Shown here piece by piece: positions 44,101 through 53,100 of a DNA stretch of 64,000 nucleotides. Position numbers and translations under genes: made by a program. Source of the stretch: Mizuhopecten yessoensis (taxonomy: Eukaryota); NCBI RefSeq assembly GCF_002113885.1, contig NW_018407539.1, positions 99,341 through 163,340 of the forward strand, in the 5' to 3' direction. The notes under the pieces are model-generated. The model did not search any database. It was not told where the DNA came from and saw only the letters and a program-made list of their open reading frames with translations. How positions within the stretch are numbered: the first letter of the stretch is position 1; each line of letters begins with the position of its first letter.

Positions 44101-47100
44101 CATTTAATATAGATTGGACAGTAAACAACCCAAAGAAAATTCTTTTAAATCTTTGACATCGCCAATCTCAAGTACAGAATAATTAGAATTAAAGAGATTT
44201 TCATTTAATTTGTAAACAACTATTTGGGTTTACTGTCAATAGTTTAATGAGAACAGAATTTTTAGTATTACAGTAATACAGCATAATAACGACCAAAAGA
44301 TTGTATTTGTTTGCACTTCATTCTGTTAGACCGTTTTTGCTGCTGGAACTTGGCCGGTTTTGTCTCGACCTGGACTTTGCAGATCTCGCCCATGACTGTG
44401 TGAACCACATGAAGCAGTGTGTTGTCAAGGTAATTTATTACTGATGTGTAGTTGTAGGTCTGGAACCAGACAATCCCCTCTCTTCTTACTGTCTTTAGTT
44501 TTCCTTACAGATAAGGAAATAGTTCTTTCATTAAATAAATAATAATAATGATATACAACATTTGATATAACACCCTATCTAGCTAGAGTAAGCCACTCTA
44601 AAGCACTTTACAGTACAAAGATAAGCATACATTATAATCAATACAATTTTGAGGAATTCGCAGGAGCTGCCTTATTAGACACTAACTACTAGTCCTATGC
44701 CACCTGGCTAATATCTCCCTATGTGTGTATGCCTGCATGTGTGCTGGAGATGTATTGTATAATGTACAATGGGAAATGTATAGGTCCTTGTATAAATAGC
44801 ATTATGAATATGACAAAGAAGCAGCCTTGTCAATTATGAAAGTCATTTCAGGGACATTCTGTTGTAGTTTATAAAAGACACATGGATTATCTTTATACAA
44901 TGTACCATGAGAGTAAGCTGTATAATGTATTTGTAGGAGACTGGATTCTACCTGGAGCTTGAGTTACTGGAGTGTGACTTGATGCTGCATTCTCTGGGCG
45001 ACAAACAGGAGTCCTACCAGAAGTCTGTCATTGATGTAAGTCATCATTACATAGTTTTATCTAAAACACGGATCGAGGCTGGTGTCCTGAGTGACTGAAA
45101 TGTTGCTCTTCATCCCTTGTTCAACTCATACGGGTGACAAACACACGGAGAAGGCAACATAATTATTTATGATGAAGATAGAAAAGTTTCAACATGACAC
45201 TGAACTTATTTTAGTTGAACCATGTTAGCATAGCTACATTGAACTGCTTATTTAATGAGGGACTTCTTTCTTTATTAAGAATATGTATGCAGCTCATACA
45301 TAGCCATGTAACCTTAACCTGCAATACACTGCAGTTAGTGTGTAGTATATCAACATTTAAAGGAAATAGTACCTAGCACTCAATTAAAGATGAAATTGTT
45401 ATACCTGTTATGCAAGTCATCATATCTTGCTTGTTCAGTCAATCAAATGAACAGTCTTTGACTTGTTACGACTGGTAATTGCTAATGATGCATTAATGAC
45501 GTATCAATGTAAATGATGTCACAACCACTTGAAGCAAGCATAGCTCCACAATCCTGTAGTTACAATGGTATCATGTTTTAGTGGGAGGCATTCATGAGGG
45601 CAATAAAGCGTATTCACAATGAAACAGATTCATGTTACCTCAAATGATATACAGTGTAGTAATTATGAAAATGATAATCCTATTATATCTCCAGCTGAGG
45701 TTACAGGCTATCAAGCGTTGTGAGGAGACCATTATGAATGCCATTCGGCATGGTGACCCAAACGTAATCCAGGCTGCATGTGTCACCCAGTGGAACACAT
45801 GTCTGCCTCTCCTTCAACTCAACCTGCGACACCATGCCCGTAAACCCCTCACCCTGGTAGCCGAGGCCTTGGAGGATATAGAGAGGTATGATTGACCATA
45901 CATTTATATATATTGTCAGATGTCTGGATTCAGATGTAAAAATCTTTGCTCTTTGCCTGGTAACGGGTAGAGCTAGTACAAGGAGGTAACTGCTTCTGAC
46001 TGGTACCAGTAGTCAGTGAGTCCCAGGTGACAAGTTTGTGTCAGCAGGATTTTCTCTTTTAACCTTAGCACGTGTGCTGAACAGAATATATCTGTTGTAT
46101 TATCAACTTAAAATACTGACTGTTTTATAACTGACAATGTTATTTCTAATTCAGCACTAAGTTATCACCTTTCTGAGTCTAAATATGACTGTTCTGGATT
46201 AACAAGCCTAAGTCAAGAGACCATTTAATGAGCCCTAAATTGTGTGTTACAGTTTACTGATCAGCCTGCGATGTCAGGTACACACAGAACTAGCCAAGTG
46301 TGAGGAGGACCAGGAACAGATACAGGTGGCCATGGACAACCTCAAAAAGGTACACAATTAATATGGCAGTAATTACAGTTTGTCATCTGTGTCATAAAAT
46401 ATATCCATTCTATGGATAAGTGTACATGTTCCTCAAAAAATAACTAGCCCTCCACCACTCTGTCGTGGGTTTGAGGCCTATGTGGGGAAGTCGCCAGGTT
46501 CCGACCGGAGGTCGGTGGTTTTTCTCCAGGTACTCTGGTTTTTCTCCACCACCAAATTCTGGCACATCCTTAACTCATTCACCCCTAAAGACACATTTGA
46601 ACTCTTCCAATTCAAAGATTGGAATAGTGCATTATGAAATTTCAGGGGTTAGTGAATTAATTGACCATGTCTGTTAATAGAATTTAAAACACAAACAAGC
46701 CATGCCCTTAATGTCAGTCTGGAAACTTTATGTTTCTGTGTTTCTTTGCCATTCACGTGAGTTGATTAAAAATTCAAATATGAATTTTCTGTTGGTTTAT
46801 CAATTTTTGAATATAAATGCTTGAAGTTGATTTTTTTAAGTTTACATGAGAACAAATGGTAAAAATCTATTTGCTTACGTTTGCAAGACTGGCTCTGTTA
46901 GTCAATGTTAAGGGTCGGCTCCATCTAAAGCTGAAAAACTAACCAGTCACTCTTTATTTGTGTGCTGTGAGAAAATAGAGATGTTTAAAGAATGAACAGA
47001 GCTGATGTCACATTTAAATGTTATTGTATTGTGTTGATATTCTCTAGGCCTAAGCATTAGATGATGGGAATGTGTACCGTGAGAGTTGTGTTGATATTCC

Positions 47101-50100: not shown

Positions 50101-53100
50101 CTAGGCCTTAGCGTTAGTTGATGGGAATGTGTACCGTGAGAGACTGGAGGTTTCTCTACGTAGACTAGAGCTGAGGTCACATTTAAATGTTACTGTAATG
50201 TGTTGATATTCTCCAGGCCTTAGCACTAGATCCCTAGGCCTTAGCATTAGATGATGGGAATGTGTACCATGAGAGACTGGAGGTGTCTCTACACAGACTA
50301 GAGCTGAGGTTACATTTAAATGTTACTGTAATATGTTGATATTCTCCAGGCTTTAACATTAGATGATGGGAATGTGTACCATGAGAGACTGGAGGTGTCT
50401 CTACACAGACTAGAGCTGAGGTCATATTTAAATGTTATTGTATTGTGTTGATATTCTCTAGGTCTTAGCACTAGATGATGGGAATGTGTACCGTGAGAGA
50501 TTGGAGGTGTCTCTACGCAGACTAGAGCTGAGGTCCCAGTTGTACCAACAGCCTGGATATTCTCCAGGCTTTAGCATTAGATGATGGGAATGTGTACCAT
50601 GAGATACTGGAGGTGTCTCTACACAGACTAGAGCTGAGGTTACATTTAAATGTTACTGTAATATGTTGATATTCTCCAGGCTTTAACATTAGATGATGGG
50701 AATGTGTACCATGAGAGACTGGAGGTGTCTCTACACAGACTAGAGCTGAGGTCACAGTTAAATGTTATTGTATTGTGTTGATATCTCTAGGCCTAAGCAC
50801 TAGATGATGGGAATGTGTACCGTGAGAGATTGGAGGTGTCTCTACGCAGACTAGAGCTGAGGTCCCAGTTGTACCAACAGCCTGGATATTCTCCAGGCTT
50901 TAGCATTAGATGATGGGAATGTGTACCCTGAGAGACTGGAGGTGTCTCTACACAGACTAGAGCTGAGGTTCCATTTAAATGTTACTGTCCTCTGTTGATA
51001 TTCTCCAGGCTTTAGCATTAGATGATGGGAATGTGTACCCTGAGAGACTGGAGGTGTCTCTACACAGACTAGAGCTGAGGTTACATTTAAATGTTACTGT
51101 AATATGTTGATATTCTCCAGGCTTTAACATTAGATGATGGGAATGTGTACCATGAGAGACTGGAGGTGTCTCTACACAGACTAGAGCTGAGGTCACATTT
51201 AAATGTTATTGTATTGTATTGATATTCTCTAGGCCTTAGCGTTAGTTGATGGGAAGGTGTACCGTGAGAGACTGGAGGTGTCTCTACACAGACTAGAGCT
51301 GAGGTCACATTAAATGTTATTGTATTGTGTTGATATCTCTAGGCCTAAGCACTAGATGATGGGAATGTGTACCGTGAGAGACTGGAGGTGTCTCTACACA
51401 GACTAGAGCTGAGGTTACATTTAAATGTTACTGTAATATGTTGATATTCTCCAGGCTTTAGCATTAGATGATGGGAATGTGTACCATGAGAGACTGGAGG
51501 TGTCTCTACACAGACTAGAGCTGAGGTCCCAGTTGTACCAACAGCCTGGATATTCTCCAGGCTTTAGCACTAGATGATGGGAATGTGTAGCGTGAGAGAC
51601 TGGAGGAGTCTCTACGCAGACTAGAGCTAAGGTCACATTTAAATGTTACTGTCCTCTGTTGATATTCTCCAGGCCTTAGCACTAGATGATGGGAATGTGT
51701 ACCGTGAGAGACTGGAGGTTTCTCTACGTAGACTAGAGCTGAGGTCACATTTAAATGTTACTGTAATGTGTTGATATTCTCCAGGCCTTAGCACTAGATG
51801 ATGGGAATGTGTACCGTGAGAGACTGGAGGTGTCTCTACGCAGACTAGAGCTGAGGTCCCAGTTGTACCAACAGCCTGAGAGACCCGAGGACATCGCAGC
51901 CATGATTATAGAACAGGTAAGAAGTAAAACTCACAAAAATGTATCTATGAGAAGCTAGAGGCAATATTACGGTCTAGACTGAACAATGTTAATGTATGCT
52001 TCATGGATGGCTCAAGTTAGGCTGTCAATTTTTTGTAACATACAGATACAATATAGCACTTAAATTTTGTGAGGTCAAATTTTTGGCAGTTTTGTTTTTG
52101 GAACAAATTTAACATTTTGTGCAACACTGTTAATGTCAGTAGCCCTAATTTTATCTTTTTCAGAATGGTAATAAATACAGATATAGAGATTTGAAAAGAA
52201 AAAAATGATTTTATGAAGATACTCTAGCCTCTTGGCATTACCATTACAATATATTGTGCTGTGAGTTGGTTATTAATGATGTAATATGTTTCAGGCGAGA
52301 AAGGCCGACTCAGGCACCATCAGGATGAAGCGGTCACTCCTGGTCAAAGCTGGAGAAGCCCTAGCTCCAGATGCTTTCCTGTTAGTACTGGACAGTGAGA
52401 GTGACACCAAAGGTCAGTGAAGGTCACTGTAATGTATATTAGGGATTGTGTTGTGTGTGAGATGTTTGTAATGTGTAGGTATTGTTTCCTAAGATAATCC
52501 AACTTTTGAAGTGAATGATATTGGTCTTAAAAATTATATCACAAAACAAAGAGTGTGCTTTGTTTAACCTAATAAGGGCACCAGGTCTAGATTAAATACA
52601 AGTTTGGGCCTTTATTTTGACACTATATGTATATCACGACTAAATATTGTCCAATCACTGAAGTGAATATAACCTTCCTTGATGAAACAGTCAATATTTG
52701 AAAATGACATTGAAACAAAATCACATCGCAGCAAAAGTATGCTCCTTAGTACCCATCCCACGCTGCCCCCATCTCCCATCCCACGCTGTCCCCATCTCCC
52801 ATCCCACGCTGCCCCCATCTCCCAGCCCACGCTGCCCCCATCTCCCATCCCACGCTGCCCCCATCTCCCAGCCCACGCTGCCCCCATCTCCCATCCAACG
52901 CTGCCCCCATCTCCCATCCCACGCTGCCCCCATCTCCCAGCCCACGCTGCCCCCATCTCCCATCCCACGCTGCCCCCATCTCCCAGCCCATGCTGCCCCC
53001 ATCTCCCATCCCATGCTGCCCCCATCTCCCAGCCCACGCTGCCCCCACCTCCCATCCCTACTTATCCTCACAACATATGTATGTAGTCTAACAATCAATC

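Follow-up and report, generated by a model that had tools for sequence, protein, structure and literature searches.

The 64,000-nt stretch of Mizuhopecten yessoensis DNA analysed here (the window; positions 99,341–163,340 of the forward strand of contig NW_018407539.1, assembly GCF_002113885.1) carries part of a gene that we assigned to CFAP46 (cilia- and flagella-associated protein 46), and one intron of this gene is largely filled by a tandem array copied from its own 3′ splice junction. The gene was assigned to CFAP46 because its exons are collinear with named CFAP46 proteins; for this, the exon translations were searched singly against proteins rather than as a joined model. Exon A matched 156 proteins, many of them 2,500–2,800 aa long and always near their residues 350–450, and five of these long matches are named CFAP46 or cilia- and flagella-associated protein 46 by their sources. 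Against amphioxus CFAP46 (P0015), exon C showed 68% identity over all 44 of its residues (P0015 485–528), directly after the exon B match, and the joint between exons B and C is without gap or insertion relative to amphioxus residues 484/485. A Pfam scan of the five exon translations matched no family. For a view of the whole gene, the contig was extended by 120 kb beyond the window (“extended coordinates”; two N letters in the window and 725 in the extended region), and 39 collinear tblastn matches place CFAP46 between extended coordinates 33,963 and 116,263 (~82 kb). The C-terminal part of CFAP46 (P0015 2619–2664) has a second tblastn match, with 59% identity, at extended 155744–155881 (L029), ~39 kb past the last matched exon, perhaps through duplication of the terminal exon or because a paralogous fragment lies there.

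The donor of exon B (AAG/GTACAC, 46349/46350; a slash within a motif marks the exon–intron junction) opens the array-bearing intron, in which the array occupies 4,787 of 5,435 nt. Tandem Repeats Finder described it as a repeat of period 112 bp with 41.6 copies and 90% matches (47203–51858), with partial units at 47029–47295 and a second level of period 330 bp, 5.0 copies and 91% matches (50236–51878). Anchored on the exon-derived motif, we counted 44 copies, namely 43 decoys and, downstream of them, the real exon at 51785. A typical unit joins ~39 nt from the 3′ end of the intron, with its pyrimidine-rich stretch and YAG, to exon C positions 1 to ~73; in three “long” units of 106 bp (starting at 50462, 50791, and 51455), exon positions 1–94 are joined to intron position −12. 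A YAG acceptor is present in 41 of the 43 decoys, and over all 44 copies the acceptor triplets are 32 TAG, 10 CAG (nine decoys, including the two nearest the real acceptor, and the real site itself), and two dead triplets (TTA and TTG). Only copy 44 continues into exon positions 95–132 and the donor CAG/GTAAGA. Read in frame, the bulk unit runs for 33 codons to a TGA and retains an open 24-codon copy of the exon start, and early stops are found in four 5′ units and in some 3′ units. The real exon is distinguished from the bulk units at exon position 10 (C>T) and position 56 (G>A). A 63-aa open reading frame on the minus strand spans two bulk units.

These features agree with most of what the original prediction, made from the letters alone, had described: a ~43-copy array of a CFAP46 3′ splice junction, a unit of ~39 nt of intron end and ~73 nt of exon (to which the three long units with 94 nt are now added), a last unit that alone reaches the donor CAG/GTAAGA (confirmed by slicing the array into units), a bulk unit reading into a TGA after the exon-derived part, and two letters diagnostic of the real exon. 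Its contrast between TAG in the bulk and CAG in the functional copy held for the real acceptor, but CAG also occurs in nine decoys.

The array is composed of four layers (Table 1): a decayed partial copy, irregular old units, a young homogeneous core in which 21 identical units span 2.35 kb, and a block of 330-bp repeats, the last copy of which ends within the real exon C. This layering suggests repeated duplication events, and the start of the real exon would have been drawn into duplications more than once because the last 330-bp copy ends within that exon and the array is layered. In local alignment, identity to the unit jumps to ~97% at 46998; the segment immediately upstream may be an older decayed unit or a pre-existing similarity. 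As a possible origin of the array we also considered slippage between short direct repeats, AGAGCTGA[T/G]GTCACA, in the intron at 46998 and at exon position 63, which match at 15 of 18 positions (a match reached in 1 of 300 shuffles). This origin was rejected because ~62% similarity to the unit runs 39 nt further to the left, and the “intron motif” at 46998 is more likely part of an older decayed copy.

Table 1. Positions of the CFAP46 exons, the parts of intron B–C and the other junction arrays of the gene (window coordinates unless stated otherwise).
Feature	Position	Strand	Remarks
Exon A	45695–45885	+	191 nt; aligns to residues 390–451 of amphioxus CFAP46 (P0015)
Exon B	46253–46349	+	97 nt; 88% identical to P0015 residues 453–484
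Unique 5′ part of intron B–C	46350–46958	+	609 nt; no tandem repeat by Tandem Repeats Finder
Partial copy of exon-derived part	46959–46997	+	~62% similar; local alignment to unit starts at 46959
112-bp tandem array	46998–51784	+	intron B–C of CFAP46, directly 5′ of real exon C
Irregular 5′ edge units	46998–47416	+	spacings 57, 88, 112, 112 nt; early stops; one copy without acceptor
Homogeneous core	47417–49880	+	22 units of 112 bp, 21 of them 100% identical; TAG acceptors throughout
Transitional variant units	49881–50235	+	one dead TTG acceptor; one 133-bp spacing
3′ block, 330-bp higher-order repeat (112+112+106)	50236–51784	+	three long units with 94 nt of exon; nine CAG decoys
Exon C	51785–51916	+	132 nt, phase 0-0; acceptor CAG/G (51784/51785), donor CAG/GTAAGA (51916/51917)
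Exon D	52295–52412	+	tblastn to P0015 528–568; RNA joints
Exon E	60207–60337	+	start from RNA loose end after 52412; end approximate (tblastn match)
Donor-side array, 77 bp x 7	63563–64105 (L019:204-746)	+	ends 105 nt past window end
Second acceptor-side array, 113 bp x 2.8	extended 75640–75951		
Seven further donor-side arrays			69 bp x ~33, 39 bp x ~86, 60 bp x 3, 28 bp x 7, 54 bp x 6, 52 bp x 20, 44 bp x ~53
Eight further junction arrays, places 1–4	L020:2953-5261; L020:5895-9236; L021:1383-1573; L021:1640-1951		
Eight further junction arrays, places 5–8	L021:9715-9913; L022:7007-7333; L023:5592-6632; L024:9070 to L025:1305		

In its own assembly (988 Mb, 82,659 contigs), all 23 matches of the unit fall at one place on contig C4212, repeat counts being lower bounds. 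The array is a single-locus minisatellite and not satellite DNA, as it had been labelled, because the unit matches only its own place in the assembly. It is also multi-copy in independent DNA: in run X10, from another study, word depth on pieces of the array was 26–169 against 8.5 on the single-copy flank, which is 3–20 times the flank depth, and the summed bins reach ~260–290 (~30 times the flank), although these word depths are not copy numbers. A pure assembly artefact is ruled out because of this 3- to 30-fold excess in another sample. Several 3′ variant bins had no X10 contig placed, which is as expected if alleles differ and proves nothing. The copy number of 43 is provisional because 21 identical units over 2.35 kb in a fragmented assembly cannot be sized by short reads. 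A word search for other assemblies via the 63-aa minus-strand frame returned no candidates and is uninformative on the absence of the array there.

We compared the splice signals of the decoys with those of the real exon, scoring donors by matches to nine consensus positions and acceptors by the number of pyrimidines in the 20 nt from −23 to −4. The decoy acceptors contain 12–15 pyrimidines and the real acceptor 12. On the donor side, no GT matching at least 7 of the 9 positions occurs anywhere in the array by this crude measure, and the real donor of exon C scores 8 of 9. The original prediction had proposed that a weak AG/GTCACA donor within each unit defines a pseudo-exon; this site (GAG/GTCACA) matches 5 of 9 positions by hand count, and no joint using it is listed over the ten decoys covered by mapped RNA, so that the pseudo-exon is unsupported. 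Because the decoy acceptors equal the real one in pyrimidine content and the array contains no strong donor, the pattern fits exon definition, in which the last acceptor would be chosen for being followed by a full exon and a good donor. The locus had been put forward as a natural test of exon definition, and the signals do fit, but such a use has a precedent in human F7 (PMC1557585).

RNA evidence on splicing came from reads and contigs mapped on 50700–52450, which corresponds to the last 10 of the 43 decoys together with exons C and D. The RNA contig X17 (2,054 nt, depth 28.5) aligns from 51783, and its letters before this position are the unique end of exon B (46318–46347); the 2-nt offset of the alignment start is explained by the two shared letters AG. 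X17 joins 46349 to 51785, 51916 to 52295, and 52412 to 60207. The assembled transcript uses the real acceptor and passes over ~41 look-alikes, as expected from the prediction that some 40 near-identical acceptors are bypassed. In the proposed tally of acceptors joined to the 46349 donor, X17 counts for 51785, at low depth and with ten decoys covered. The joint of exons C and D (51913 to 52292; cut +3, GT..AG) was found in eight reads of X23, in three reads of X24, and in the X17 contig. In these two raw RNA runs, depth was 1–5 over exons C and D, and the ten mapped decoys received no more than one partial read from each run. No retention or nonsense-mediated decay (NMD) isoform was seen in the mapped RNA, the coverage of which was very low and confined to the last ten decoys. 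We also observed that the reference reads C at both 51841 and 51859, but RNA of other individuals reads T and A, respectively. The two changes are synonymous, and each of these letters is also present in decoy units; L032, the closest relative, carries A at the site equivalent to 51859. An older allele may have survived in the decoys, or sequence may be exchanged between the copies and the exon.

In four related lineages (L011, L012-14, L016, and L032), exon C is present in a single copy and the B–C introns measure 246, 394, ~466, and 1,100 nt, a range similar in size to the 609-nt unique part of the window’s intron. The closest of these relatives, L032, shares 93–97% protein identity in exons B and C, and the relatives’ exons have ~75–85% DNA identity to the window where a DNA match was found. 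The array is absent at the orthologous intron in all four lineages compared. It is lineage-specific and younger than the splits from these relatives because they have one exon C copy and short introns. Copies of other junctions of the region were observed in two of the relatives. In L011, decayed copies of the exon B donor junction, CCCTTGAAAAAG/GTAGGTCA, number at least five in the orthologous B–C intron of 1,100 nt (L011:11019-11500), where none is expected by chance; the donor is intact in one of these copies. In L032, the contig of which has a B–C intron of 246 nt without the array, the exon C donor junction AATGATCATTGAACAG/GTATATATTGACATATTTACAC stands twice in tandem at ~1290–1385.

The CFAP46 gene as a whole contains 32 tandem arrays with a period of at least 12, which make up 35.8% of its 84.5 kb. 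Ten of these 32 overlap and copy an exon edge; we refer to them as junction arrays, and eight are donor-side and two acceptor-side, with the array of intron B–C (the index array) included. The index array is one of ten in the same gene and belongs to a known class (“mirages”, PMC3087553); it is not singular and represents no new kind. Each donor array begins with the real exon end and repeats its AG/GT junction. In the 77-bp array at the end of the window, the unit combines the final 66 nt of the exon that ends at 63629 with 11 nt of intron (GAG/GTAGGTACAAT), and six decoy donors follow the real one, the later copies carrying stops. A further array of 33 bp x 78 at extended 102247 was not counted as a junction array; it starts 5 nt past a donor. 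Separately, arrays with GTAAGT-like motifs (e.g., extended 93600, 95377, and 96595) adjoin stretches without a tblastn exon; they may be junction arrays of undetected exons. We modelled random seeding by placing arrays of the same periods on the array-collapsed gene and discarding wholly exonic seeds. This predicted 2.9 ± 1.6 junction arrays, and no simulation out of 2,000 produced the observed ten. The result concerns one gene, picked for its index array, with approximate (tblastn) exon edges and with survival bias outside the model.

Based on these observations, we propose, with a probability of roughly 0.8, that the array of intron B–C is a “mirage” minisatellite that arose from a duplication straddling the intron/exon boundary of exon C, is spliced out, and is most likely neutral or slightly deleterious. 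The first duplicated segment would have been the 112 bp from ~−39 to +73 of the exon C junction, and the array would have grown by replication slippage or unequal exchange. Later, and several times, a 330-bp segment comprising two decoy units and the first 94 nt of the real exon would have been duplicated. As every extra copy is located upstream of the real junction, the extra copies are intronic and are removed with the 5.4-kb intron. The mRNA is formed by joining 46349 to the last copy, which alone continues into the remainder of the exon and a good donor, consistent with exon definition. In a genome with a very high rate of minisatellite formation, the array would most likely be baggage of neutral or slightly deleterious effect.

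Several results weigh against this proposal. The RNA depth is low, with 13 and 6 mapped reads in X23 and X24 and 10 of 43 decoys covered, and minor use of decoys, especially where NMD clears the products, is compatible with such thin coverage. In X23, one partial read maps to ~32 nt of unit 41 (near 51453–51484, as estimated from binned depth) and may represent a decoy junction, pre-mRNA, or an allelic form of the real junction. On the same crude measure, the real donors of both exon A and exon B reach only 6 of 9, and sites with 6 of 9 within the units cannot be called dead for this reason. Finally, junction arrays are ~3.4 times commoner in CFAP46 than random seeding predicts, and neutrality with random birth alone is insufficient because of this excess.

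That the array instead acts as a regulatory device, in which 41 look-alike acceptors capture splicing, NMD removes the products, and copy number tunes CFAP46 output, we consider improbable. The decoy acceptors look as good as the real one, nine of them with CAG; use of a bulk decoy leads to a stop after 33 codons; the X23 read on unit 41 might be a product of such use; and mammalian decoy exons are reported to regulate intron retention (PMC6097662). However, the assembled transcript takes the real site, almost no reads fall on the ten mapped decoys, no donor in the array reaches 7 of 9 (GAG/GTCACA having 5 of 9 by hand count), absence from four relatives shows that the array is not a conserved device, and nine other junction arrays of very different size argue for a mutational process and not for design. 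The suggestion in the original prediction that copy number tunes productive against NMD-targeted CFAP46 mRNA accordingly found no supporting evidence, the RNA being too thin to close the question. Still less probable is that the assembler or a gap filler created the array, or most of its 43 copies, from a true locus of one or few copies. The fragmentation into 82,659 contigs, the identical core that short reads cannot size, the 3′ variant bins without an X10 contig, and DNA runs containing only ~0.6 of the sampled words speak for it, but the depth excess in X10, 3′ variant units and a higher-order structure too varied for gap filling, and similar arrays throughout CFAP46 speak against it.

A process linked to transcription or splicing, which makes splice junctions preferred seeds or survivors of tandem duplication, is compatible with the mirage explanation and seems to us an unlikely but serious addition to it. 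The excess of junction arrays over random seeding, the split into eight donor-side and two acceptor-side arrays, and the junction copies in relatives at other junctions of the region point in this direction; against this stand the choice of a single gene for its index array, the approximate exon edges, detection and survival biases outside the model, and a process for which no mechanism was observed. Carried further, this idea would make junctions seeds via a transcription- or splicing-coupled process, large acceptor arrays a means of slowing or diverting splicing, and their length a heritable, fast-mutating dial on CFAP46 output, a combination that we regard as a long shot. The decoys might also serve as raw material for new exons or introns, as in the Ebner/Rogers model proposed for amphioxus globin mirages (PMC3087553), by which a decoy becomes a real exon or shifts the intron position. 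Bulk decoys do keep their open 24-codon copy of the exon start, but exons B and C meet at amphioxus residues 484/485 without an insertion and no transcript evidence of decoy use as an exon was found, which leaves this outcome extremely improbable. Overall, we favour the mirage explanation.

Two further observations were made in the window outside CFAP46. Upstream of the gene, a run of open frames of 144, 74, and 164 aa at 27375–28455 (plus strand) looks like the reverse transcriptase of what we take to be a non-LTR (long terminal repeat) retrotransposon. On the minus strand at 5404–5892, a 162-aa open frame with an ATG start and a hydrophobic stretch, ending in GTVYTTIGK, resembles the first exon of a two-pore potassium channel.

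The index array provides a large acceptor-side example, in which 41 usable-looking 3′ splice sites, nine of them with the CAG of the real site, are all passed over for the last. Together with the eight donor arrays, in which the real exon end comes first, it forms a natural series for the study of splice-site choice. Given the ~three-fold excess of junction arrays in this gene, junctions may be mutational hot spots. Such arrays are also a trap for homology-based gene prediction, as they create dozens of false exon matches; tblastn with CFAP46 proteins returned ~38 false “exons” within the index array (47105–51753).

Mammalian decoy exons reportedly need splice sites on both sides and are said to have been shown to regulate. 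Like them, the CFAP46 decoys are intronic look-alike splice sites able to engage the splicing machinery unproductively; in contrast to them, they have good acceptors without a good flanking donor (none of at least 7/9), and the array is not evolutionarily conserved, being absent in four relatives. Decoy exons are reported to promote intron retention (Parra et al, 2018; PMC6097662). A second point of comparison is intron gain by tandem duplication of an AG/GT-containing segment (the Rogers model; Hellsten et al, 2011, PMC3265369; Lehmann et al, 2010, PMC2891723). Here as there, local tandem duplication copies splice signals and the duplicated part is spliced out. However, the duplicated segments in those cases are exonic proto-splice sites and a new intron results, whereas in CFAP46 an existing intron was enlarged from ~0.65 to 5.4 kb and no new intron arose.

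In the 37-bp VNTR (variable number tandem repeat) of human F7 intron 7, the first element spans the exon–intron boundary, and the silent pseudo-donors have been used to model how splice sites are selected (Borensztajn et al, 2006; PMC1557585). The CFAP46 array shares with F7 a boundary-spanning terminal element and an authentic site beside normally silent pseudo-sites, and represents the acceptor-side counterpart of that model: F7 is donor-side and its most upstream site wins, whereas in the acceptor-side CFAP46 array the most downstream site wins, and the several copies in F7 compare with 43 here. The closer analogues of F7 are the eight donor-side arrays of CFAP46.

The nearest known systems are the amphioxus minisatellites spanning an exon–intron boundary in Adh3 and in the globin genes BflGb6 and BflGb9 (Ebner et al, 2010; PMC3087553), for which the term “mirages” was coined in the case of Adh3 (PMC3087553, citing Canestro et al, 2002). 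Published mirage units measure 10–160 bp, and for the Adh3 mirage length polymorphism and somatic instability were shown (PMC3087553). The BflGb6 mirage comprises the intron 3′ end together with exon 2’s 5′ part in 3–6 copies; many of its units carry AG/GT signals, splicing is regular, and the boundary units are exempt from homogenisation (PMC3087553). The CFAP46 array is likewise a tandem minisatellite, the unit of which spans an exon–intron boundary: it is head-to-tail and of minisatellite size (112-bp period, 44 motif copies), its unit holds intronic and exonic sequence of the real host junction (~39 nt and exon positions 1–73/94), and the authentic junction is the terminal, exon-side copy with all extra copies intronic. 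It corresponds to the acceptor-side subtype seen in BflGb6, many of its units carrying splice signals while regular splicing is undisturbed, as seen in the X17 joint of 46349 to 51785 (one assembled transcript at low depth), and its centre is homogenised, with 21 identical central units between diverged 5′ and 3′ units. The CFAP46 array differs in having 43 decoys where BflGb6 has 3–6 copies, in occurring in a mollusc and not in a cephalochordate, and in a 330-bp higher-order layer that repeatedly re-includes the start of the real exon. We regard the array as one more mirage minisatellite, probably neutral, of the class already described in amphioxus.

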